Assembly: GCA_001179505.1 (NCBI GenBank)
Contig: CDMY01000636.1
Location: 1 to 37,885, forward strand
DNA length: 37,885 nt
Reading direction: 5' to 3'
Source of the DNA: Vitrella brassicaformis CCMP3155
Lineage: Eukaryota > Protista > Chromerida
Part shown: one piece after another, positions 1,733-30,941 of the stretch
Layout: each line of letters starts with the position of its first letter
Position numbering within the stretch: position 1 is the stretch's first letter
Position numbers and translations under genes: made by a program
The notes under the pieces: generated by a model
The model's input: the letters and a program-made list of their open reading frames with translations, nothing else
Database searches by the model: none
What the model was told of the DNA's origin: nothing

Positions 1733-2650
1733 AGCATAGGGCGGTCTTGAGCATGTCGTACTGCCGAGTGCTACCCACCTTCACGAAATACCTGGCACAC
1801 AGGACAACAGCACATCACACATGTGTCTGGCCGCGTGTGTGATGTGTCAGGAGGCTCCCTCGCCCCAGAGGGTTGGCGGCAGACTGGTCATTCCGGGCAT
1901 CAAACGATCCCCCCAGCAAGCAGCCGAGGGGCCTGCAGCCAGCACCGATGCTTACCTGGAGCGGGGCATGGTGGTGGTTGGTGCGTCGCCGTGCGCGCCA
2001 TCGACGGCAGAGGGCTCTGCTGCATCGCGGGTGATCAGCAGTGGGCAAAGCAGCACGCCTTCCTTCGGCAAAGGGGAGGCAGAGATTGCTGACAAGGCGG
2101 CTGTCGTGTGTTAGGTATATTGCTTCTTCGCTCAGTCCGCTTCCTTGCTGTTTGTCAAGCTCGCCTGCTGGGTTTCATGATGTGTGTGTATAGCAAAGAC
2201 GAATGGGTCAGCGCGGGCGTGTCGCTATTTTGTTGAAAGCTGCAATCCAATCCGTCGTGGCTGTTTAGTTCTTTGTATGTATGTGTGGCAAGGTTATTGA
2301 AGGAAGGTGAGACGGCACACGGACATCCATTCATCCACATGCATGGTTAAAAGCACAGGTAGGTATAGCAAATCACGCGAGGAAGGTCCGCATCCGCATC
2401 ACGTACCTGCAGCATTCACGTGGTCCGGTCCGTAGGTGCACATGACAGCGTCAGTCATTGTGGGAAAGTCAATCAGTACTAGTGCGTCAGTCAATCACAT
2501 CCTGCTGGCAGGGCAGGCCATCCACCCACCCACCACCCACTCACACATCAACACAACACAGCCTCCACGGCACCGCACTCTACTGCCGTCTGTCTTTGCC
2601 TCGGATGAGCCGGGTCGGGTGATCCATCCATCCATCCATCGGTCGGTGGA

Positions 2651-3320
2651 TTACTTTGGGTTTCTGAGTACGATGATGACGCTGTCGCCTCGTAGGAAGA
2701 GCCTGGAGATGTATCTCTCCTTATTGACCGCCTTGGCCTTCTTCTTCCCAGACCCCTTCGGGTACTCCGTCCACATCTCCCGAACCTGACACGACACACA
2801 CCACATACACACGACAGACACGCCACGCAATGCCATGCCAGGCGATGAGCCACCCGCAGCAAAGCATTGCCATGTTGTCATGTTCAGACACACCTGCTCC
2901 AAGACCATGTTGCAGTGTCTGTCAAACGCCTTCACCTGAACACACATCGAATCCAGCCACAGAGCGGTCACGGTTCGTGTTGTCTTGTGTGTTCTCGCTC
3001 ACCCGTGCGATGATCTTGCGGTTGTTTCTGCAGTTGATGAGCACCTGCGCATTGTCCTTGACCGACTGAACAGACAGACGTGACACACACGCACGGCCAC
3101 GGTGAGCGACGTTGCTGGCGCCTGTTCAGCGTGTGCGTCAGTCACACTGGCGTGTGCTCACTTGAAAGAGGACGCTCAAGGGACCCTCCTCAGGCGCATC
3201 TCTGTTCGCCGTGTCCGTCTTGTCTGAAGCACGACACACAAACCACACCAACAAACATTCAGGTTGCCATGTCTGATACTTTTTGCGCGTCGTCAGCTTA
3301 CCTTTGTCTGTCATCGCCAT
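2651..3320 (-). CDS. SNRPD2: Small nuclear ribonucleoprotein Sm D2
   Basis: Spliced product [106 protein letters not shown], matching the hallmark SmD2 sequence. Confidence 0.97.
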
Positions 3321-3352
3321 CCTGTCAGCTTTCAGGAGAACTTGGGAGATCT

Positions 3353-3418
3353 GGGTTTAGGGTCCTCCACTTCCTTGGGCATCAAACCCTAGACCGAGAA
3401 ACCCTACATGTGTGGGCC
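3353..3418. promoter_or_regulatory. Putative bidirectional promoter with telo-box-like (AAACCCTA) and site II-like (TGGGCC) motifs
   Basis: AAACCCTA at 3384-3391 and 3399-3406, GGGTTTAGGG at 3353-3362, TGGGCC at 3413-3418, all in the 139-bp gap between divergent ATGs at 3320 and 3460. Confidence 0.4.
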
Positions 3419-3459
3419 CCCAGTGCAGGTTGTCGTGTTTGCGTTGGTTTGAGCACATC

Positions 3460-4504
3460 ATGGGCGGGCTACGAGGGCCTCTCATCCTGTTGGTCTTGTC
3501 AGTCTCGCTGGCCTTGGCCCACGTGCACGGAATCCCAGCACGAAGTGAGACGCCGTCCCGTCCCGTCTCCCCAACCACTTGTCTTCTGCGTCGCTTTTCG
3601 CAGGTGCCCGGCAGCCTGTTGACGGAGATGAGGCAGCAGAGAAGGGCTCCAAGGGCTTCATCTCCCCCTGGCCTGCTGTTAAGCTGGCTGGTCAACTCGG
3701 AAAAGCCGGCTGGAAGATGGCAACCGGACAGAGAGGTGTGCACCACAGATCTATGTGGCAACCGGACAGATCTATGTGGTGCAGACCCGGAGAAGGTGAA
3801 GAAGATGGAAGAGGAAGGCAGGTACGGCGTGCCGTCCTTCAAGCCTCTCTCTGGTGAGCAATGCCATCCTTCGCCTCCATTGAGTGTGTCTTATGCCTCC
3901 ACGTGTTAAGCAACGGAAAGCCACCAGAGCGTCTGATCTGTGTGTTTGCTCATGCATTCCCTCAGAGTTGGCTGGGAAGGCCGGCACAGGGCTGGCGAAG
4001 GAGGCGGGAAAGTTCTACCACGAGACAGGTCCAAGTCTCGGCCAGAGAATGATTGAAAGCATGGTGGGCGCCGGCAAGGCCGCCCAGTACTACGCCAAGC
4101 CCGCATTTGGCACCACATCCGAGGCCTACAAGCAGCATGCCATCGACACCGACGTGGCCAGCCAGAGGCAGGAGAGAGACATGCTGGCGCTCCAATCCAA
4201 AGCCGATTTCCTCAAGGAGGAGCTGAAAACGCTCGAGGGCAAGAAGGACGCCGACAGCGTGAGACGCAGGAACGAGATGGAATCCTACCTGGTCGGTGGG
4301 GTCTGTCTGTCTGATGGATGGATGTAGGCATCAAAGCTTACTCCCTGTGTGTGTGGCTGGCTTTTCGATTGTCAGCCCGGCCTGGAGCGAGACATTCTTC
4401 AGGACAAGAAGAGCATCGCAGCGCGGCAGCAGCAGCGGGCCAAGATGGCAGAGGACGAGTTCAAGTACGACAAGGCGACCAACCTGGTGGGGCCCTGGGG
4501 CTGA
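3460..4504 (+). CDS. Hypothetical secreted protein, helical/charged C-terminal half
   Basis: Signal peptide MGGLRGPLILLVLSVSLALAHVHG; phase-consistent exons ...ARQPVDGDEAAEKGSKGFISPW... / DPEKVKKMEEEGRYGVPSFKPLS / ELAGKAGTGLAKEAGKFYHET...NEMESYL / PGLERDILQDKK...KATNLVGPWG*; no family recognised. Confidence 0.75.
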
Positions 4505-4641
4505 GTGGCCGGTCAACGATCTGAGACACAGAGAAATTCTTACAATACCCCATCCCTTTTTAACGCCATTCTTTCAGTCGTGCAAAGCGTGAAAGAGACA
4601 CTGAAAGAGCCATGGACATGGACGGGGACATGATTGATCAG

Positions 4642-4698
4642 TGAATGAATGAATGAGTGAATGAGTGAATGAGTGAATGAAGGAATGAATGAATGAAG
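4642..4698. repeat. (TGAA/TGAG)n microsatellite
   Basis: gtgaatgaatgaatgagtgaatgagtgaatgagtgaatgaaggaatgaatgaatgaagg. Confidence 0.9.
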
Positions 4699-5368
4699 GA
4701 ATCAGTCAGCCCTCCCACACAGATGAGAAAGGCACCATGCCAGACACTCACCTCACGTGCATTGCGGCTCTGGTAGTGATGACAAGGCCAGTGACCCGGG
4801 TGGATGATCCTCAGGTGTGGTGCAGAGACCCGTGCTGTACCGGACGGCCAAGGGGAGACAGCAAGGCTTCTATATAGACACAGTATAACAGGGGGTGCGT
4901 TAGAGACGGCCTCTCGTGTGTGTTGTGTCCGGCCTCCAGGGTGTGTTGTCTCTCCAGGTGTTTGCAAGCTCCTTTGCAACACTCACTGGTGCGGTGTGGA
5001 TGTGTGTCGACTCGACATACAAGGATCGTAGGCAAAAGGCACATGCATTCATTTAATTGATGTCAACACGACACGATGGATGCGATGCACCCATGCCATG
5101 TGTGTACGCGAGTCCAGCCGGCGAGACCATGCGATGCAAGCAAGACAGTCAGTGTCCAAACACACACACACACGCACGCACACGCACATACATCATTCCA
5201 CTTGTAGTATCTCGGTAGGCTGCACAGACTGACTGACAGGGAGAGAGGAAGAGGCATAGAGCCCTCAGAAACACACCACACACCTCTGCCTGTACCCACA
5301 CCACACCACACAACACGCATCTGTCTATCTACCTGACTGCACGCGTGTCCGTGTCAGCGTCTGCGTTA

Positions 5369-6401
5369 TCATTCTCTTCCTATGATGACGAAGAAGCCCA
5401 TCGTCCCAACCAGCACGAACTTCAACCTGTGGTGCACAGACCAGACCAGACAGGCATACAGCCAAGCACATCACATCTTCGCCCTTTGTGTGCGTGTCGG
5501 CTGGCACACTGCTGACCATGGGTAGTCGTTGAGCCATATTGTAACCATCCCCACGTACGGCAAGAACCTGTGCAGATGACACGACCAAAGGAACCAAACA
5601 CATGTGCTGCCTGGGTCGATTGCGGGGTGTGCGGTTCTGGTTTGGTTGCTTTGTCGTGTGTGGTGTGTCATACGCGATAGCTCTGCCCATGATGTCGCTT
5701 TTGTTTAGCCACAGCTGGCCCGGTGCATAGAGCCCCCGGTCATCCACGTCGTTGTTGTCACCCTTGGTCAGGATCTTGACATCACCCTTGCCCCTGACAA
5801 CCCATCAGCAACACACTCTCACAGAGTGGTGTCATCCCTCCCTCCCTCCCTCTGTGAATGGTCACGTACGTTTCGTGCACTTCGAGGACTCTGTGTACGA
5901 TGGGAATGTCGCGGCCCTTGATCTTGAACACCACCACATCGCCGGGTAGCACGGGTGTGTCGGGGTTGTTGAGGAACAAGATGTCACCGCGATAAAAACC
6001 CGGCTCCATGCTCCCACTGAATGACATGGCAGCACAAACAGACAACACATGTGCTGTGCCGTGCTGTGCCGTGCTGTGCCATGCTGTGCCATGGCTGGTG
6101 CGAGGAAGCTGTTCTGACCTGAGTACGACGACCACAGGCGACTCTGAGCCGGTGATGACCATGAGGCCCTTCCAAAGCATTAAGGCAGAGAAGACGATAC
6201 AACACAGATTCAAGATCTGCTGCACAAACTGCACACACAAGCAGCAACAGACAGACAAACAGACAGACAGACAGAGACAACCGACAGACAGTCGTTCACT
6301 TGTTCTTGCATCGGTGGCCTGCCGAGATCTGATCTCACCTGCCGTGGTTTGCTGAACAGCGCCCGGAACTCATCCCAGTACTGACGCACCGTGTCCATCA
6401 T
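5369..6401 (-). CDS. SEC11: Signal peptidase complex catalytic subunit SEC11
   Basis: Spliced product includes [108 protein letters not shown]. Confidence 0.97.
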
Positions 6402-6584
6402 CCTCACTCACACAGTCACACCGCCTACAGATCCCTGCTTCTCGTCTTCACGCTCAGTTGGCTACCTCATCGCAGGCACGAACGAACGCACACCCAAGCG
6501 TTTCTTCACCACGTTCGCTCTTGAGCTTGCAAACAGTTGCGAGCTTAGCTCCGGGAGGTCCCAAGGCATTAAGAGGCTTCCAGG

Positions 6585-8311
6585 ATGTCAGATGAGAAGC
6601 TGATTCGTCGGCTGGGGTACGAGAGGGTGCGGCCCATCGGTCGGGGTCAGCACGGGCTTTGTTACCTTGTCAATGAACACAACGAGGGCAAGGCGCAGTC
6701 TGGCAAGGGCAAGTTCAGGGGCCCCTTTGTGGCGAAGCTGGTGGACCTCGGACTGCTGCCGGAGAATGACCGGTGAACACACACACACACCACAACTCAT
6801 CCCGCAGCATTCCGTTCCTGTGTTGTGTGTGCTTTGGCTGTGCGTCATCCATCGTGTTTGCAGCAAGATGGCGTATCAGGAGGTGGAGTTGCTTGAGCGG
6901 CTGCAGCATGACTACATCGTGGGCTACAGGGACAGCAGACTCGACAGCGAGAGGGATGTACTCGTCACCGTCATGGAATTCTGGTCGGTCAGCAACACCA
7001 GCCAGAGAGACGGGAAGCCTTGCCGCGCTTGTCGTGTTGTTTCTGGATGGATCTACCACTCACTCTGTGTGTGCGTCTGCCTGCAGTGAGGGCGGCGATT
7101 TGAAGGAGCTGATCAACCAGGTGGCGGCGCAGGACCTCTATCTGGCCGAGGAGCAGATCATGCGGTGGTTCGTGCAGCTGGCGCAGGCACTGGCCTACCT
7201 ACACAGCAACCGGGTGCTGCACCGAGACCTCAAGACCAGCAACATCTTCATGACAAGTGACAGGCAAACGGCCAAAATAGGAGACTTCGGGTGAGGATGA
7301 GTATGAGCGCCTTATATATGATCACGACACACTCACCCGGCCCGGCCATCCATCGACCTATCTGTGTGTCCTGCCTGTGTGTGGTGTGGTGTGCACTGAC
7401 TGCAGTATATCTCGTGTGTTGGAGGGTGCGCTGGACTTTGCTGCCACGACTGTCGGGACGCCATACTACATGAGGTGAGGTGGCCAGGCAGCAGGCAGGC
7501 AGGCAACCAAATTATAGATAGGAACGGGATGGACGCATCGCATCGCATCGCATCCCCTCTGTGGTTGTGTTGTGTTGTGTTGTCTGTCTGTCGATTGTTC
7601 GTTCGTTCAGTCCTGAGGTGTGTCAGAACAGCCCCTACAGCTTCAAATCTGACGTCTGGTCACTCGGGTATGTGTGTACCCATACATCCATCAATAGGAA
7701 GGGGGCATCGAATTGGCTGTCTGTTCGTGTATGTCTGACTGACTGGATGTTGTGTGTGTGTTGCAATGCAGGTGCGTCTTATACGAGCTCTGCATGCTCA
7801 AGGTAAGGTACTAGACTGTGGATGGGCAACTAGACTGTGGCAATGTCCATCTGTGTGTGTGTGTGTGTGTGCAGCATGCATTTGACGCCAACAGTCTGTT
7901 GGGGCTGGTGTACAAGATCGTGTCGGGCAGCAGCCCGCCAATCCCACCGTTCTACTCCAAAGACCTCAGCACACTCATCGAGTAAGCCAACACACACACA
8001 CACACACACACGCGCGCGCGCCACCCACCATTCATTGCAAATCGAATGTTCTCCTTTCCCCTCGCACACTCAGCAAGATGTTGGCCAAGGATGCGGCAGA
8101 TCGTCTGACGATAGACGAGGTGCTGGGCAGTCCCTTCGTCAAGGACTACCTCCGGGTGGCCGCCATGGAGGAGCAAAACCTCATCACACACGAGGCCGCT
8201 GACGCCATCGGCTTTGTCAAAGTCGTCAAATACACTGACGGACACATCCACGTAAACCACACACATCACAGATACAGTGGAGGGATGAATAAACGTCTCT
8301 CTCAATGCATG

Positions 8312-22310: not shown

Positions 22311-23877
22311 ACGCGCTGCTGCTGAGCCTGGCTCGCTCAGCAAGACCAACAGCAGCTCAAATCTTCCTTCTTTGGACACTGCAGCAGGTACACACACACA
22401 CACACACACTCACAAGCTCTTTCCATCTCTTTCCATCTTGCTTGTCAGGCCAGGGATGCTTTGGAAGTAGTCGACATCAACCGGCTGCGAGATGCCCTCT
22501 GCGGCCACATCAAAGCACGGGTGAGCATGGCCCAAGGGCAGGAAGGAGGACAAGGACCATGACATTATCTGCTTGTCGCTCAGGTGAGTTCGTTTAGTGT
22601 GGATCCGTGCCAATTTGACACTGGCCAATGTGTTGGAGACCTCTGCATCATCTGGGCGTGGGCCAGCTCGAAGGCGATACCACTGCCGGCTGGTGGTGTC
22701 TTGCCCATGCGCGTTGGGAAGAGACTCGACGCCGTCACGAGGGCGTATTTCAGCCACCTGTGCGAACAGGTAAGAGGCAATGACGGAGAAACACGTGGCC
22801 CCTGTTCTCTCTTTCGTGATGTCTTCAGGGTGGTGATACCCGTCCGTGTCTGTTCACCCGGCGTGACATCAACTGCAAGGCGCTGGCAGATCTGATCAAC
22901 ACCATCACGCCGGCGGCCAAGCGCAACACCACTACCAGCACTGAAACTACAAACCAACAGAGTGGGCACCGCACCGCGTCCACCCACACGCATGAACGCG
23001 CACCTTATGCCAACGCCCATGTGTGCTGTCGTCATTCGTGTTTGCAGTTTGCTCGTACGTCGACGCACTGAAGGCGTTGGCCGCCTTCTACCACGGCAAA
23101 CGGTCGCATCCCCCGCCAGCGTATCCCTTCGGTTCCCCGCCCGACGTCCACAGCATCACACAAGCACTTGACCTTGGAAAGGTGCCGTCCGGCGTCAGCG
23201 GTGCCTTCAGCAGCCACCGCAGCGGATATGAGATGGATGTCGTCGTGTCGGCGTTGCATCCCCAGGCTGATGACCTGCGGCAGTCTTCACAACAGGTACT
23301 TGACACTTGACACATGTCGTGCTGCACGACCTTTGTCTGCTGTGTTGATTTGTTGCCGCTACAGCAGGCGGTAGAGTTGCGTGCAGCTTCGCACTGCCTC
23401 CACGGCAGAATCGAGAAGCGTCGAGTGGAAAGCAATGCTGCAGCTGATGGTGAGCAGGCAGAGAAGCGTTGGTGGTGCACCATGCGGGACGCATTTGTGG
23501 CTCTCTCAGATGAGGTCGGTGTCGTTCACGGCCACTTCACCTGCCAGAAGCCCACCCGCCCACCTCCCGCCCCGCTGTTCCTCTTCGGTGGTGCGCCATC
23601 GACACCATCGCCATCGGCTGATGAGACGCCGTCACCAGCCGCAGTAGCATCATCGCCCTCCCGTAGGCGGCGTGGGAGAGGGAGAGGGGCGGGGCCAGAG
23701 CAGACCTTTGGACGGGGGCTGACTGCCCCATCGTTTGAAACCTCACCGCCCGACGGTATGCACGTACGCCGACACAAAGGCAGGAAGGAATGCTCGGTTG
23801 TGCTGTTGGTTGATGTGCAGAACCAGCCGGCAAGAGGAGCAGACGGCCAGAGAGACGGGGGGAGTGAGGTGACGTGA
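22311..23877 (+). CDS. Hypothetical multi-exon protein, possibly a continuation of the upstream RCC1 gene
   Basis: Phase-consistent exons SDALLLSLARSARPTAAQIFLLWTLQQ / ARDALEVVDINRLRDALCGHIKAR / VSSFSVDPCQF..HLCEQ / GGDTRPCLF.. / ICSYVDALKALAAF.. / QAVELRAASHCL.. Confidence 0.55.
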
Positions 23878-23923
23878 GGTGAGGTGTGCAGAATTCCAAG
23901 CTTCGTTGGTGCTTTGCTTGCTG

Positions 23924-23956
<33 letters not shown>

Positions 23957-24806
23957 CTGGACTTGATGCCGTCTGTCCCTGTGTTGATTGGGTGTGACCG
24001 AGCGCACCTGGTACATCCCTGTATGTGTGTGTGACTCAAATGAATTTCGTCCTAACTTGAGTGAGTTAGCAGTCTAGTTGAGTTCGTGAGATGCCGTCCG
24101 TGAGTTTGTGGTGACCGACCTGAGCTGATCTGCACTGCACTGCACTGCACCGGACTCCATCCACACGGCAATCAATGCTAGGTAGCTTAGCGTACATGTG
24201 TGTTTCAGAGAGAGAGCTCTCACTGCTCGCCTGCAGACAGACGGACGGAAGCATCACGAGACATCTGGCAGTTCACTGTTCCTGCGTCACCTACCTGATA
24301 CTTCCAATGCCGTCGTATCGGCCGCGTCTTTGAGCTCAGCGGGTCTCTTTGTTTGCTCGTGTGGCGAGCGATGCCTTCTTCACAGGCTGCCATGCATGTG
24401 TCTGAATGGTTTACCTGGCGATGTGTGGTGTAGCCGCATGTGTGTGTGAACAAGGCCTGAATGACAGACAGACTTGCTATGCTGCGTGCCCCTTCATTCA
24501 ATGCGATTGATGGCATGCATTTGAAGATTCACTGGATCAATGGGCAGAAACTGCGGTCGTCTCCAGCCAACCTCAAAGCATCATCAGCTGTACATTTCAT
24601 GTTCTTTCTACTCACATCCTTCACGCGACAAGAAAACACCTGAGGCAATGCGAGCAGGCAGACAAGAGACCGGCATGCAGGCAGGCATGCGACCCTCTGA
24701 GCGACCCTATCGACACCCACTCCCCCTCTGCAGCATGCCTGCCTGGTCCCTCGATGGGATTGCTACAGGTATCCCTACAGCTATGGCTACGTCATATCTC
24801 GTCCGG

Positions 24807-27800
24807 TCAGTTCTGCATCTTGGCGCTGCTGCTGTCGGCCGACCGCTGGTGCGTCTTGAGCAGCACCTCCAGCTCGGCCACGTCACTGTCCTCCAGCAGA
24901 CACTTGTCGTACACACTCTCCACCGACATCTACACAACCACATCCATGCGTCGAGGTGGCGTGTGTGTGTGGATATCTACCGTGTAGCCCTCTTTCTTGG
25001 CGATTTTGGCCAGGAGCCTCTTCATGTTGTCCCACAGCACACGCAGCTGCGAGTCGGCCGCTATGGCGCTCTCGTCGGCCAACTCGCGGGGCTGCACACA
25101 TACACATACACACATGGAGCCAACGACATTTATGCTGTCTGTCTGTCTGCGTGTCTGCCTGTGAGCCCTCTCGCCCACCCAAAGGTCGAGTTTGTTGGCA
25201 GGCGTCTTGATATGTGTGTCGTTGCGTGCGATGCGGATGGCACAGTGGGCGCACATGGTGGCCAGCTGGGCGGGAGACAGCGACACGAACACATGATAAC
25301 CGAACGACAAATACTGAACACACACACACGCACAAACACACACGCGCGTCGATAGAAACACCACACCCAGGTCTATGTGTCGACATACATACCATAAGTA
25401 TGGTGGCCTTCTGAATCACGTATTCCTTGACGCTCTCATCGCCCCACTGCACCGCACGGCCATACCGACGCAGCGCGCGGAACGGCGAGGGGTAGTACAC
25501 GGCGAAGTCGAGCACCCGCAGCACGTCGCTCTGGACGGCCTTGAGGGTGGCCACGGGGGCTGGCTGGTCGCCGTCGTCAAGGATGATGTCTTGCTTGCCT
25601 GCAAAGCCGCTCTGGAAGCCCTCGCACTCCTCGTCGATATCGTCGATGCAGTGGTCGTTCATGTAGGCCAAACTCAGACACACGACACCCGTCTGAATGA
25701 ATGAAAGGAGGAATGTACCCAATGCATTGGGGGGGGGGTCACCGAAGGGGAGTGAGTGAGTGTGTGTGTGTGTGTGTGCCTACCACCAGGTATTGGTATC
25801 TGGTGAGGGGTTTGATGCCCTTGCCGGCCACGAGCTGCTCCTGGTACCGCCAATACACATAACGGTCCACCTGACAACACCACACCACAGCACAGCACCA
25901 CCCATCCCAAATTCCTCTCGCCCATCCCCCACCCACCGGCCCACCATATTGATGGCCGTGGCGATGCCGTCCTCGCCAAGCGACAGGTCGTTCTCACCCC
26001 CATCGTCGTCATCCTCATCCTCATCTTCATCGTCGACACACGCCGTGACGTCGTTCCAGCACACAAACCGGTCCCACAGCCTGGCGCGCAGGGCCGGCAG
26101 CTGGATGTCGCCGCCGCCGTCACCACCGCCATCGCCAGTCAGGAGCTGCTGGCTGTGGGTGGCGAAGAAGTCGCTGTCTGGCAGGGTGAATCTGCGGTGC
26201 TTGTCGTGCTGCAGATGCATGCAAAATACGAGAGAGATTCCAACAGGGAGGCGCGGCTGGCATTTGGTGTGGCTTGGCAGACGGACGTACTTCGATAGTC
26301 CTGAGGTGCTGTGGTCTGTAGTTGTCAGGTCGGTTGAGTCGGGTCGACGGCTGCCGCCCCTCCATGTACGAGGCGTACTGGTACACTTGCAGACCCAACA
26401 CACGCTCGAAGAAGGGGTGCCGCAGGGCAGCGGGACCCGTGATGCGCTGCGTGGGGTTCACCTTGAGCAGGCTGACACAACAACACACACACGAAAGAAG
26501 GAGGGTGCAGACAGACAGACAGACAGACACACAGACAGACTCACGTAGAGTACCTTTCCAGTAGGTCGATGGCAAGGGCTTCTGTTTCGGCGTCCATGTC
26601 TTGTCGAGGCGGGTCTGCACTCTTGAGCATGTCCTTCAGGGTGCAGCCGTCCTGCGGCTCCTCACCGCCGTCGAACCCCTCCATCATCTGCCCGCCCATT
26701 CACGTCAGTCAGGCCTGTGTGTGCAACATAACATACACACCTGTTCGTAGTTGTCGAGTCTCTCCACGCCCTTCCAGGTGCGATTCGTCGGCTTGCCTAC
26801 ACAAAGACACACACCGGATGGCATTGCACGCGCCGCACCGTTGCCACCCCAACCGGCGAATGGGTGGGTATCCGTTGGTCTCTTCTGTTTGGTTACCCAC
26901 CGAATGCTCTTGCGATTTCCACGAGTGTCTCGCGCTCCTCATCCAACCGCAGCACCTCTGGATGCTCCCCAGCAAACAGCAGACGGCCAGTCAGCAGCTC
27001 GCCGAAGATGCACCCCACCGCCCAGATGTCCACCTGTCGCATGCCATGGGCACACGCAAAGACACGCAAAGACAGCCGGATGTGACGTGCACTGCACGGG
27101 ATGCGATGCGATGCGTACGGCACTGAAGTAGTCTCGCTGGCCCAGGATGATCTCTGTCAGATCAGACACACAAAAGGATCGAAAAAGGGGAAGGGACTTT
27201 CGTACAAGACAAGTGGTAGAGAGAGAGAGGGGGGCCCCCATGATCTGTCTGTCTGCCTGTGTGACCTGGTGGGCAGTAAATCTTGGTGCCGACGCCTCGC
27301 GGGCTGCGCGACACGTAGGGAGTGGCGGGGGTCGCCTGGGCCATCCTATACATAACACACACATCCACAGAGAGAAAGCGGTTCAGACAGACGTGGACGA
27401 ATGTAACTGTGGGGGCGTCCATTCGCGAGGCTCACCCGAAGTCGCAGATCCTGACGTAGTGGACGTCCTTTGGCCGTCCGTGTTGGTTCAGCTTCAGCAG
27501 AATGTTGGATGGCTTCAAATCACAATGCATCACTGCACGAGAGCAACAGAATGACGAGAGCAATAAAGAAGCGCCACATGTGGCAGCAAGTGATCATTAC
27601 CCACCCTGCTTGCCGCCAGGACCGCCCGTGTGCATGTGAGTCACGCCCTTGACACACAGACACAGGTAGGGAGAAGAAAGAGAGACCGTCAGAAGCACAT
27701 GGTGTGACCCCGCTCGTCACTCCATCAGTCAGTCAGTCAGTCGTCCCTACCAGTAGGATTTGGTATAGGATCTCAGCGACCATCTTGATCTGCATCTGGT

Positions 27801-28077
27801 CACTCAGCGACCGGTGGTACTGGCTCAGGTTCTCATCACCCAACTCCTGACAACACAAACAACACACACAGCGTCGCATGTGTGTGTCAGCCGCCAGCCC
27901 ATTCCACATCGCTCACGAGTATGAGGTAGCTCGTGTTGGTGTTGGGGTCGACGTAGGCGGCGTGCAGCTTGGTGATGGAGGGATGTCGGGCGGCACGCAG
28001 CGTCGCCGCCTCCAGGTACGTATCCGACGACAGATGATTCACACGACTGGGGTAGCGCGACTCCGGGTCGACAGTCG

Positions 28078-28110
<33 letters not shown>

Positions 28111-28644
28111 GGCACACACACATGTATCCCACAGCCACTGCATCCGCATCAGGGCCTTCCTCCCTCCCTCCCCCTTGCGCACCTTCTTGATGGCGTAGCA
28201 CCCTCCCTCCAGCTTGAGCCCAGGTTCCACCGCCAGCTTGGCGGCGACGTCATCGGTGACCACACACCTGTACACCTCACCGAATGAGCCCCCGCCCAGC
28301 CGCTCCGGCTGCAGCTCATGCGTGTCGAGCCCCAGATCTAGCAGAGATCTGCCGCCGGCCGTCATCTGCCGGAGTCTGCCGGTGATCGGGATGATGAGCT
28401 TGGAGAGGAAGGGGTCTGATGCCACCTCGTAGTCCATGGCTGGCAGAACCTGCAGCCAGCAGGACCAACAGACAGAAGGGCAAAGGACGCATTCGGTGAG
28501 GATCAATTGCCAATGGTGGGTGGATGGATGAATGTTTTTGCTTTCTTGTCGCTGCACCTCCTCGCCGTCGGAGCGCCATTGCGAGCTTAGATCTTGGAGG
28601 GAAAGTGAAGTGGAGAGGCGTTCATCTTCGTGCTCATCGATCAT
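24807..28644 (-). CDS. CDK-like kinase fused in frame to a C-terminal cyclin domain
   Basis: Kinase LGGGSFGEVY, YAIKK, YLEAATLRAARHPSITKL, ILELGDENL, HCDLKPSNILL, ICDFGMAQ, VGTKIYCPPEIILG, VDIWAVGCIFGEL, FGKPTNRTWKGV, DLLESLLKVNPTQRITGPAALRHPFF; cyclin box LRARLWDRF, TAINMVDRYV, QYLVTGVVCLSLA, VQSDVLRVLDFAVYYPSPFRALRRY, LSPAQLATMCAHCAI; start at 28644 or 28437. Confidence 0.8.
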
Positions 28645-30941
28645 GTTCAAGAAGCCCGTGACGCTGTCTGCTCGTACGTCGCTGAGCAACAAAGAGAAGA
28701 AGAAGCTGCGTGCGGCGCTCAAGGAGAGGTTCCCGAGCCTGACGGACGTAGATGCGGACCTGCTGGTGCCCGACGGCGACGAGGTGCAGACATGCAAGGT
28801 GCAGGCCACGCGCATCGTCCTCTACTTCAGACACAAGGATCCTGTCATCGTCAACAACGACGGCTCGTTCTTCCCCACTGTCTACGGCCTATGGCTGGTG
28901 AGGCAGCCATATTGATGGCCGCACACACGACACATTGAGGATTGGCATCTGTGTGTCTGTGTGTCAGGTGCCGAGGATGCTTCCGTGTTTCTTGGTGTAT
29001 GCTCCCGTGTCCAAGTTCCTCATGGGCGGCGCAGACCTCATGCTGCCGGGCGTACTGCCGCCCAAGCGATGGCCGCAATTCCAAAAGGGAGAGCTATGGG
29101 CCGTCAGGTCGGTCAGTCAGTCAAGGAAGGAAGGACCACAATCACCACTCACGGCCGCAATGAATGACCCTCTCTTTCGTTGTGTTTTGATGTGTGTCTG
29201 ACAGGGTGATCGAGAATCAGTACCCCATAGCCGTCGGCAAGACGATGGTCAGCAACAAGGACATCTACTACCAGGGCATGCGGGGCCGCGGCCTCGAGCT
29301 CTACCACTCGTTCACCGACCACCTGTGGGAGCTCGGCAGCAGGTCCACACCCAACGCCAGCTTCACAGCGGCCGGCGTGACAGGCAGCGGCGACCCAGAA
29401 GAGACGGAGCTGGGCGAGCCCCCGGAGAAGTTCCCTGCGCTGCCGATAGCTTCCAAGGGAGAAGACGAACAGGCGGCAGGTGGCAGCGAGCGTGGCGATG
29501 AGGACGTGACCAACGGTGGGGTCAAGGAAAACGAGGAAGAGCAGGAGGGAGAGGGAGAGGGAGATGAAGGGGATCGCGACAACGATGACCGCTGCGACGA
29601 GAGGGAAGAGGAAGAACACGAGGAGCAGGAAGAGGCCCAACCATCGTCATCATCAGCATTCGACAACTCGGCGGCTGCAGCCGCTGGTGCTGAGGATGAG
29701 TCCCCAGTCACCGGTCCGCCCCCCGTGACCCTCACCCCCGACCAGATGGATGTCTATCTGCATCACTGCCTGCTGGAGGTGCTCAAGACGTCCGTGCAGG
29801 AGAGCCAGCTGCCCCTCGATGCAAGCGCCATCTACAGCCTCATGCTCGCCGCCGCCGACCGAGTGGCGCGACACAAGGTGCTCATCGAGGCGCTCGAGAA
29901 GACTGGCATCGCCGACGAGGCCGTCAAGGCCTTCCTCCTTGCCCCCCCGCCCCTGGACGTCAAGCGGTCCTCTCACAAGAAGGTGCCCAAGCTGTTCACC
30001 CATGCGGCCAAGGCCAAGCTGCTCACCACCAAGGAGCAGCGCGGCAACCAGATCATCACCGGCATCAACAAGCAGCACCCCCAGGTCACCGCATACACAC
30101 CAGCCCCCGAGCGACCCAAACCATCAGCAGCCGCAGCCGCCAGCAGCTCATCTTCATCTCAGCAACAGCAGGGCCCCAGCAGCAGCAGCGCCGGCAATGC
30201 GAATACCACCGGCGATATGGTGCAGGTGTTGGAGTTCTACAAGCCCGGTCAGCGTGTGCAGCCGGTGTTTGCGGCGGCGGGCATCAAGACGGGCAAGGAG
30301 CGTTTCTTCACCATCCAGGAGTGCCGCGAGGCCGTCAACAAGTACGTCAGCGAGCGCCTGCCGGCGGAGGGCGACAAGGGCAAGAGTGTGGTGCTGGACG
30401 CAATCCTGGCGTCAGCGGCTGGCATGAAGGGTCAGGACGGCACCGAGGTGGCCAAGGCCGAGCTGTGGAAGAAGGTGCAGAACAACCTCGACGACTACTT
30501 CTGTGTCGTACACCCGGGCAAAGACCATGCAGGTCAGTCAACACAACACACGAGTTCACACTTTTGCCTCTAATGTGTCCATTCTCTCTCTCTCTCTCTG
30601 TGCGTGTGTGGTGTGCAGTTGACCCAGTGAGTATCAAGAAGGGTCCGATAAGCAAGATAGAGGTGTCTGTTGAGGACCGGTCTGGCGGCCGCAAGCACAC
30701 GACCCACGTCCTGCACCTGGCCACCTACCACTTGGACGAGCAGGCCGTGGCTGAGTATCTGTCCAGGAAGCTGGCCTGCAGCAGCAGCACATACGAGCTG
30801 CCCGGCAAGGGCGACAAGGGCGGCACTGCCGTCATGGTGCAGGGCAGCGCGGCCAAGCAGGTGGCGGAGCTGCTCACCACCGAGTTCAAGGTGCCCCGCA
30901 AGTACATCGAGACCAAAGACAAGACCAAACCCAAGAAGTGA
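28643..30941 (+). CDS. EIF2D: Eukaryotic translation initiation factor 2D (ligatin)
   Basis: MFKKP..KEKKKLR N-terminus, FFPTVYGLW, PUA domain VSKFLMGGADLMLPGV..PIAVG, DVKRSSHKKVPKL, C-terminal SUI1 domain RSGGRKHTTHV..LACSSS..VMVQG..FKVPRKYIE; phase-consistent introns. Confidence 0.93.

Follow-up and report, generated by a model that had tools for sequence, protein, structure and literature searches.

CDK control is usually explained by the separate synthesis and destruction of cyclins. CDKs that naturally carry integral cyclin domains were described in 2010 from oomycetes (e.g. PITG_21617), Paramecium, Tetrahymena and Theileria annulata (Judelson & Ah-Fong, PMC3019232). The oomycete genes were confirmed by RT-PCR or RNA data, and all reported fusions carried an Asp-to-Asn substitution in subdomain VIb; catalytic inactivity was proposed for the oomycete proteins, and a role in stability was suggested for the cyclin part (PMC3019232). 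As discussed in two reports, an engineered fission yeast Cdc13–Cdc2 fusion (the "minimal Cdk network") was active and could run the whole cell cycle (PMC4319789, PMC8248981). Natural hard-wired CDK–cyclin proteins are rare and little studied, and those on record are suspected to be dead kinases.

A gene of this architecture was analysed in Vitrella brassicaformis CCMP3155, within a window of 37,885 nucleotides (the whole stretch of DNA under study, contig CDMY01000636.1). Its single 764-aa product probably consists of a CDK-like kinase (residues 45–386), a linker of approximately 70 residues and a divergent cyclin (approximately residues 404–744) that pairs with the kinase. The gene is an uncommon new example of a known architecture rather than a protein of a new kind. 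The preliminary description of the locus knew of no described natural example in this lineage; outside it, fusions are on record from oomycetes, with relatives in ciliates and Theileria (PMC3019232). No report of a CDK–cyclin fusion for chromerids was found in the literature. The Vitrella protein has the same order as the oomycete fusions, a CDK-like kinase followed by a C-terminal cyclin in one transcript-confirmed open reading frame, whereas the yeast fusion is man-made, carries the cyclin N-terminally and joins canonical partners.

The spliced model comprised 17 exons on the minus strand, all 17 connected in frame by GT..AG introns of 51–112 nt, with a CDS of 2295 nt (Table 1). Its translation was identical, letter for letter, to the public V. 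brassicaformis protein CEM27640.1 (P0001), and the public annotation places one gene over the same interval. The public label reads only "protein kinase domain-containing"; the cyclin half was overlooked because the domain lies beyond the reach of Pfam. Three transcript contigs from three studies, X7 (3304 nt), X8 (3299 nt) and X1 (1409 nt), covered the locus. X7 and X8 (approximately 3.3 kb each) matched the whole 17-exon mRNA, and the piece coordinates of X7 summed exactly to 130 nt of 5′UTR, the CDS and 879 nt of 3′UTR. The fusion gene is genuine and expressed: as first described, the two halves lie in one frame and one mRNA without an intervening stop. The gene start had been placed at 28644, which lies outside the transcript contigs; the first in-frame ATG of the mRNA is at 28437.

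Table 1. Features of the kinase–cyclin fusion gene (positions in the window)
Feature	Position	Strand	Basis
5′UTR, ~130 nt	28438..28567	(-)	X7 pieces reach 28567, X8 pieces 28565
Coding region, 17 exons, 764 aa (ATG 28437, TGA 24807)	24807..28437	(-)	Spliced model, CEM27640.1, annotation, transcript contigs
Exons 1–6	28437-28183, 28081-27917, 27846-27751, 27647-27605, 27532-27436, 27345-27266	(-)	
Exons 7–12	27153-27119, 27033-26901, 26796-26741, 26687-26554, 26471-26291, 26208-25945	(-)	
Exons 13–17	25870-25784, 25692-25393, 25313-25179, 25091-24981, 24929-24807	(-)	
CDK-like protein kinase domain, residues 45–386, exons 1–11	26408..28305	(-)	Pfam, PDB relatives, motifs
Join region, residues 391–403, GLQVYQYASYMEG, inside exon 11	26357..26395	(-)	Between the end of kinase-paralog similarity and the start of P0013 similarity
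N-terminal conserved segment of the cyclin-like unit, residues 404–425, RQ..R..YR..H..E	26291..26356	(-)	Alignment to P0013 residues 24–45
Intron 11, 82 nt, GTACGT..TGCAG, phase 0	26209..26290	(-)	Removed in X1, X7, X8
Putative divergent two-box cyclin-like domain, residues 426–744, exons 12–17	24870..26208	(-)	Predicted structure, weak cyclin B1 matches
MRAIL-like helix LRARLWDRFVCW	26091-26056	(-)	Within cyclin-like domain
Acidic insert	26034-25987	(-)	Within cyclin-like domain
3′UTR, ~879 nt	23928..24806	(-)	X7, 372 letters beyond 24300; lower end inferred from X7 size, assuming an intron-free UTR

The kinase half is, judged by its sequence, a CDK-like member of the CMGC group, in agreement with the preliminary description. 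Pfam Pkinase (PF00069) matched residues 45–386 with 148.6 bits (E 2.9e-43), above the gathering score. The best 60 PDB matches were all CDKs (CDK8, CDK3, CDK1, CDK5, CDK2, CDK16 and a Giardia CMGC CDK), with E values from 1.8e-29 for CDK8 to approximately 1e-26 among the leading relatives CDK8, CDK3, CDK1, CDK5 and CDK2. The best named homologs were CDKE/CDK8 kinases, CDKE being the plant counterpart of CDK8, at only approximately 30% identity. The catalytic residues were intact: the AIKK lysine (81–85), the alphaC glutamate (YLEA within SDTYLEA), the aspartate and asparagine of the catalytic loop HCDLKPSN (189–196; 27527-27504) and DFG (217–219). Further motifs were the G-loop GGGSFGEVY, YCPPE, DIWAVGCIFGELL, GKPTNRTW and LRHPFF. 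The aspartate of subdomain VIb is thus kept, unlike in the reported fusions.

In alignments, a PSTAIRE-type cyclin-binding helix was not found in the fusion kinase, where the alphaC helix reads SDTYLEA. HCD replaced HRD, alignment with CDK8-type kinases and the PDB alignment placed no threonine at the position of CDK2 T160, and the G-loop had Ser-Phe where CDKs have Thr14-Tyr15 (alignment with CDK8-type kinases). Together, these features point to a CDK-like kinase rather than a canonical cell-cycle CDK, and the last three would fit a kinase free of CAK and Wee1 control. CDK8 itself has HRD and an SMSACRE helix, and pairs with cyclin C as a separate protein, whereas the Vitrella halves are fused. 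CDK8 lacks a phospho-threonine in the T-loop, and in our reading of the alignment the Vitrella kinase resembles it in this respect.

The C-terminal half is read here, on the strength of predicted models, as a very divergent two-box cyclin. The motifs from which the preliminary description had derived a cyclin are present (among them TAINMVDRYV, LVTGVVCLSLAYMNDH, VQSDVLRVLDFAVYYPSPFRALRRY and LSPAQLATMCAHCAIRIA) but are not recognised by Pfam: neither Cyclin_N (PF00134) nor Cyclin_C (PF02984) matched the whole protein at E 0.1 or residues 395–764 at E 10. That description had counted the lack of a cyclin HMM match against a cyclin half; the fold is upheld by structure, language-model evidence and a paralog. 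Pfam searches with single exons gave weak kinase matches and no cyclin match, the exons being too short. Sequence matches of the C-terminal half in the PDB were to cyclin B1 only and not significant (HMMER E 0.2–0.9); they formed two collinear segments, one spanning MRAIL..DRF and the other box 1 helix 4 through box 2. In the ESM Atlas, the structure of residues 413–744 matched a Cyclin_N+Cyclin_C cluster with TM 0.61/0.79 over 248 aa, with predicted models on both sides of the cyclin-fold comparison, and the feature neighbours were Cyclin_N/Cyclin_C clusters (181 shared features). An AlphaFold2 model, built from a 3-row alignment, was poor (pLDDT 43) and was used for ranking fold classes only. 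Its best 50 Foldseek matches (E approximately 0.007–0.09, low TM) were almost all cyclins, with cyclins C and K among the leading fold matches, besides two TFIIB-type chains.

The conserved residues of the cyclin box are, in cyclin A, Arg211, Asp240, Leu255, Lys266 and Glu295. The arginine (LRARL) and aspartate (VDRY) of the C-terminal half aligned with the MRAIL and DRF motifs of cyclin B1. The glutamate position was Gln597 in the PDB alignment, and, by eye, the leucine was kept and the lysine replaced by methionine. Two of the five classic residues (Glu and Lys) are therefore apparently replaced, and CDK binding may be altered.

For both fused halves, the closest relatives found were encoded in the same genome, as an unfused pair. 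On CDMY01000069.1, P0013 (CEL92335.1, 351 aa) and a 403-aa kinase are separate genes lying head to head, 174 bp apart, on opposite strands, and therefore cannot form one transcript. P0013 shared 34% identity with the fused cyclin half (E 8e-53), and the 403-aa kinase approximately 30% to 86% identity by exon with the fused kinase. Several splice choices of the 403-aa kinase were ambiguous, so that only its unambiguous exons were used in its reconstruction. All six introns of the fused cyclin half had counterparts in P0013 whose positions were identical or differed by 1 nt. Unlike the fused half, P0013 has a start of its own and one additional GC-AG intron, and lacks the acidic insert. Its structure matched cyclins with TM 0.53–0.65 over 225–271 aa; among the 99 nearest models, the 10 entries listed, each standing for one family set, were all cyclins or unnamed, and no other fold appeared. 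Pfam gave no cyclin match for P0013, which one source names "Cyclin C-terminal domain-containing protein". Within the Vitrella lineage, one of the two forms, fused or split, gave rise to the other, and their coexistence argues cleanly, on the Rosetta-stone principle, for the orphan P0013 family as the partner of a kinase.

Outside Vitrella, no ortholog of the fusion was found in phmmer, word-indexed, profile and metagenome searches. A phmmer search with exon 14 against 1.84 billion representatives returned as true matches only the protein itself and the P0002/P0013 cluster; RCC1-repeat proteins were discarded as spurious multi-stretch matches. Word-indexed searches with the C-terminal half and a two-sequence profile gave no match outside Vitrella, and two metagenome scans recovered distant kinases and no relative of the cyclin half. 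The nearest language-model neighbours of the full-length protein in the ESM Atlas were Nucleocytoviricota Pkinase+Cyclin_N clusters of 548 and 563 aa (score 0.99, 230/256 features shared), which have the same domain content as the Vitrella fusion and are a lead only. Kinase open reading frames from 79 giant-virus loci with CDK-like kinases showed no significant similarity to the C-terminal half, and six of them with long C-terminal tails had no cyclin Pfam match; these viral kinases were more distant from the Vitrella kinase half than cellular CDKs.

The full-length ESM model superposed both domains on an oomycete Pkinase+Cyclin_N cluster (TM 0.66 over 576 aa), a match at the level of structure; any descent shared with the oomycete, ciliate and Theileria fusions would be supported by this match. 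Oomycete-type fusions match Pfam Cyclin_N/C strongly, in contrast to the Vitrella protein. The sequence comparison suggests a separate origin of the Vitrella fusion, since its kinase has approximately 30% identity to named homologs and approximately 30–86% per exon to the unfused Vitrella paralog.

The cyclin half would bind the alphaC helix of the kinase to which it is joined, or possibly that of a second chain. The kinase would thereby always be supplied with its own cyclin, and we infer activation in cis, with activity depending on how much of a single protein is present and not on separate cyclin synthesis and destruction. It is unlikely, but the most credible of the alternatives, that the fusion is real and the kinase is not activated in cis by the cyclin-fold half joined to it. 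That half could instead act in trans (in head-to-tail dimers or on the paralogous kinase), provide docking or localisation, or be a stability-controlling pseudo-cyclin as suggested for oomycetes. The apparent replacement of the lysine and glutamate of the ordinary CDK interface and the failure of the Pfam cyclin models speak for such a role, as do the proposed inactivity of the oomycete fusions and the stability function suggested there (PMC3019232). Each of the two families, moreover, has a further member, one kinase and one cyclin-like protein, that is available for pairing in trans. However, the fused kinase keeps all catalytic residues, and both cyclin paralogs retain the MRAIL-like helix and DRY/DRF motif. 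The two families also occur together twice in one genome, fused once and adjacent once. Families repeatedly found together are usually taken as a sign of direct partnership.

Pairing of the two halves within the fusion protein thus remains our preferred reading. More tentatively, and with some doubt, the Vitrella gene might encode an independently evolved, catalytically competent single-chain CDK–cyclin in a genome that also encodes its unfused sister pair. If so, it would offer a natural side-by-side comparison of a cyclin in cis and in trans, and such fusions would have arisen repeatedly (in chromerids, oomycetes/ciliates and perhaps giant viruses). The gene keeps its catalytic residues, has lost the usual CAK/Wee1 sites and is accompanied by an unfused sister pair, and is therefore a workable case for what cells gain by kinase–cyclin fusion.

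The preliminary description had treated intron 11 as the junction of the two parts. The intron itself was as claimed, with the donor GTACGT at 26290 and the acceptor TGCAG ending at 26209, linking ..QHLRTIE to HDKHRRF... As a fusion point, it was ruled out by P0013, a stand-alone gene with a phase 0 intron in the matching position (..VVE|HDK..); judged by this shared position, intron 11 is old and belongs to the interior of the cyclin-like unit. Similarity to P0013 begins at residue 404, approximately 22 residues upstream of intron 11, and residues 404–425 share exon 11 with kinase subdomain XI. The kinase paralog ends in ..ALRHPFFKHVLKK-stop, and kinase similarity ceases before residues 391–403. 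Because P0013 shares intron 11 and the similarity starts upstream of it, the true join lies at residues 391–403, inside an exon, and is no annotation artefact.

The locus could also yield two proteins, a kinase from intron-retaining or early-ended transcripts and a cyclin-like protein from an internal start, which we regard as very improbable. The earlier statement that there is no separate start holds for the spliced RNA; an in-frame ATG (MHLQ) exists 9 nt upstream of exon 12, but it is intronic. The unspliced frame stops at a TGA near 26120, and assembled contigs drop rare isoforms, so that minor isoforms of the fusion gene may escape X1, X7 and X8. Against two products, the spliced 26208/26291 joint was present in all three transcript assemblies (the RNA check called for in the preliminary description), and none of them ended there. 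An internal start would also cut off the conserved residues 404–425, and there is no intergenic space. Although gene callers do merge neighbours, and RT-PCR was needed by the oomycete authors for this reason (PMC3019232), a wrong merger of two adjoining genes is a practically negligible explanation, as one exon contains the whole join, three studies arrived independently at an assembly of the spliced mRNA, and DNA-like contigs (X6) matched the window without differences.

The kinase-cyclin fusion is almost certainly real and expressed. Splicing by translation of the window gave a gene of 17 exons with a CDS of 2295 nt (764 aa) and introns of 51-112 nt, all GT..AG. Exon 14 alone, used as the query, retrieved the database protein P0001 (CEM27640.1 / A0A0G4GE50, Vitrella brassicaformis CCMP3155; 764 aa), which equalled the translated model at every letter. 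Its sole name is 'protein kinase domain-containing protein', and the public annotation holds a single gene with the same limits on scaffold CDMY01000636.1, of which the window is the entirety. The junction intron was recovered as the preliminary description had it (donor GTACGT, acceptor TGCAG, 82 nt, phase 0), with ..QHLRTIE and HDKHRRF.. on its two sides.

Logan contigs from four runs were placed on window 24300-29200. Splicing across the junction was confirmed by a 26208/26291 joint in contigs from three studies, X7 (3304 nt), X8 (3299 nt) and X1 (1409 nt); X6 contained unspliced pieces without difference from the window and looks like DNA. Contig X7 consisted of a 3'UTR of 879 nt (372 letters beyond 24300 plus 507 nt to the stop), exons 17 to 11 in order, 839 letters that are the exact sum of exons 10 to 2, and exon 1 with 130 nt of 5'UTR, reaching 28567. 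These pieces total 3304, the full record, and the 17-exon model is therefore matched in full by the assembled mRNA. An ATG at 28644, previously proposed as the upper gene limit, lies outside the transcript, and the first in-frame ATG of the mRNA is at 28437. Logan contigs lose rare isoforms; the result speaks for the main product, and minor alternative products may occur. A joint from 25155 to 27241 ('skips 2085') was rejected as splicing and is an assembly artefact. Microsatellites in two introns draw such chimeric joints, together with many loose ends.

Positions of the fusion gene, its parts and the related loci
Feature	Sequence	Positions	Strand
Fusion gene, CDS limits	window	28437-24807	minus
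Junction intron	window	26290-26209	minus
Join region of the two similarities	window	26395-26357	minus
Acidic low-complexity insert	window	25987-26034	minus
Intron microsatellite, (CAGA)n / (GTCT)n	window	25135-25157	
Intron microsatellite, (CAGA)n / (GTCT)n	window	27241-27262	
Head-to-head region with eIF2D gene	window	28567-28646	
3' end region with RCC1-like gene	window	~23867-23928	
Unfused cyclin-like/kinase pair	CDMY01000069.1 (L002)	2349-6603	plus/minus
Extra GC-AG intron of P0013 gene	CDMY01000069.1 (L002)	5865-5958	plus
Giant-virus kinase ORF with tail	L035	1905-4133	
Giant-virus kinase ORF with tail	L046	99-1907	
Giant-virus kinase ORF with tail	L076	857-2488	

By its sequence, the N-terminal half is CDK-like and not a canonical cell-cycle CDK. 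Pkinase (Pfam) matched residues 45-386 (E 2.9e-43), and the best 60 solved relatives were CDKs in 60/60 cases, with CDK8 first (E 1.8e-29), then CDK3, CDK1, CDK5 and CDK2. The best named homologs were plant CDKE and fungal CDK8 (~30% identity). Residues needed for catalysis were all kept: the lysine, the glutamate in alphaC, the Asp and the Asn within HCDLKPSN, and the DFG motif. The earlier CDK-type assignment held as far as the Pkinase match and the CDK relatives go, but four departures set the protein apart from the canonical enzymes. Whereas textbook CDKs have a PSTAIRE helix, HRD, and Thr14-Tyr15 in the G-loop, the fusion kinase has SDTYLEA, HCD and Ser-Phe, and no threonine aligned with T160 of CDK2. 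The fusion kinase has no counterpart of T160 or Tyr15 and no HRD arginine, which suggests that it would be independent of CAK and Wee1.

The C-terminal half had been aligned with cyclin A/B folds, with an HMM match proposed as the check. This check failed, as neither Cyclin_N nor Cyclin_C (Pfam) matched the whole protein, residues 395-764 (threshold E 10) or single exons. Sequence matches in the PDB at E up to 10 were six cyclin B1 entries only, all weak (E 0.2-0.6), in an alignment that spans box 1 helix 4 into box 2. A profile with the paralog added again matched cyclin B1 only, now as two collinear stretches; in the first, ..RA..WD..V.W...DRY lines up against MRAILIDWLV...DRF. The ESM Atlas feature neighbours were cyclin families (181 features shared), and the ESM model superposed on a Cyclin_N+Cyclin_C cluster (TM 0.61/0.79 over 248 residues). 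The AlphaFold model was poor (pLDDT 43); with it, Foldseek (350,542 chains) returned cyclins K, C, D1, B1, T1, H and A2 as nearly all of the top 50, the non-cyclins being two TFIIB-type chains. TFIIB-type chains have the same fold as cyclins. Structure matches of P0013, a stand-alone Vitrella cyclin-like paralog, were cyclins B1, A2, K, T and F (TM 0.53-0.65 over 225-271 residues), and none of those listed had a non-cyclin fold. The cyclin identity was thus retained on structure, feature neighbours and the PDB matches, though not by HMM, and the C-terminal half is very probably a cyclin fold that has drifted past HMM reach. In the first cyclin B1 alignment, a Glu conserved in cyclins is paired with Gln; a conserved Lys is apparently Met (by eye only), so the interface of the cyclin half may be unusual. 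Helices 1 and 2 of the cyclin-like domain are separated by an acidic low-complexity insert, DDEDEDEDDDDGGEND, which the free paralog lacks.

P0013 (CEL92335.1, 351 aa; transcript recorded as P0002, on a JGI contig of 1398 nt) shared 34% identity with P0001 residues 404-717 (E 8e-53). Its gene (plus) is located head to head with a kinase gene (minus, 403 aa) across a 174 bp gap. The 403-aa kinase was 86% identical to the fused kinase in the VMHCDLKPSNILLKL..ICDFG exon, 56% in ELGD..LLGVTH.H and 44% in VDIWAVGCIFGELLTGR..PPRQDMD..DLL, and by our own reading of the read-through at least three intron positions are common to both (after AIK[KR], ..LIL and DFG). These two genes were the closest relatives found of the fusion halves. 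As the nearest relatives are separate adjacent genes, they provide a Rosetta-stone sign that both families work together, and the two genes may form a co-regulated kinase/cyclin couple. No relatives of the cyclin half outside Vitrella were found in the exon 14 search of 1.84 billion sequence representatives, in word-indexed searches with the C-terminal half and with a two-sequence profile, or in metagenome scans.

The paralogs also locate the join. Similarity to P0013 begins ~22 residues ahead of the junction intron, where KQRQERVYITRKYRQWHMKVVE followed by HDKKQHF in P0013 aligns with RQPSTRLNRPDNYRPQHLRTIE followed by HDKHRRF in P0001. In the exact mapping of P0013 onto its gene, the first intron separates VVE from HDK (phase 0), at the position of the junction intron, and 6/6 cyclin-half introns of the window have a counterpart at the matching place or 1 nt off. 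The annotated P0013 maps exactly only with a non-GT donor, that of one extra GC-AG intron (GCAAGA..GTGCAG) which the fused copy lacks. Because P0013 has an intron at the same position, the junction intron is old and internal to the cyclin unit; with the similarity starting upstream of it, the proposed kinase/cyclin boundary at this intron was rejected. Kinase-paralog similarity stops at ..HPFF(K/E)(H/R)VL and P0013 similarity starts at residue 404, leaving ~13 residues, GLQVYQYASYMEG. Judged from these limits, the ancestral units meet within exon 11. A join within one exon makes a gene-caller artefact impossible.

Engineered cyclin-Cdk fusions are well known (PMC4319789, PMC8248981), and the natural architecture has also been described. 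Judelson & Ah-Fong (2010) reported four RT-PCR-confirmed P. infestans CDKs with C-terminal Cyclin_N/Cyclin_C, and mentioned relatives of these genes in further oomycetes and in Paramecium, Tetrahymena and Theileria annulata (PMC3019232). In all of these natural fusions the Asp of subdomain VIb is changed to Asn, and a lack of activity was suspected (PMC3019232). The Vitrella protein shares their architecture but retains this Asp, its cyclin part escapes Pfam, and its nearest relatives are its own unfused paralogs. The ESM Atlas clusters nearest to full-length P0001 by features were from Nucleocytoviricota (548 and 563 aa, Pkinase + Cyclin_N, score 0.99); as a lead, this suggests that kinase-cyclin fusions exist in giant viruses too. 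Giant-virus kinase ORFs from 79 loci had no sequence-level link to the fusion gene, and our literature search found no paper on giant-virus kinase-cyclin fusions. Three of the viral kinase ORFs have C-terminal tails of ~290-315 aa, in which Pfam detected no convincing family and one sub-threshold Dyp_perox_N match (L076).

A kinase that retains its catalytic residues and a domain of cyclin fold stand in one polypeptide. A linker of ~75 residues, partly conserved in the free paralog, separates the kinase end (~388) from the MRAIL-like helix (465). There is some support for a layout compatible with docking: the full-length ESM model and an oomycete kinase-cyclin cluster, both of them predictions, superposed across the two domains (TM 0.66 over 576 aa). 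The cyclin half would dock on the alphaC face of a kinase, either the one in its own chain or that of a partner, so that the enzyme would always carry its cyclin; control could then act via the level of the single protein or via other inputs. We give even chances to the earlier proposal that the cyclin half activates the attached kinase in cis.

The plus-strand neighbour, head to head with the fusion gene, is an eIF2D gene (Pre-PUA, WH_eIF2D, SUI1). The assembled 5' ends, at 28567 (minus) for the fusion gene and 28600 (plus) for the eIF2D gene, are ~33 bp apart, which makes for a very short, bidirectional promoter region. At the other end, the fusion-gene 3'UTR (~879 nt) stops at most ~60 nt from the stop of a convergent plus-strand RCC1-like gene, so the 3' ends of the two genes probably overlap or abut.
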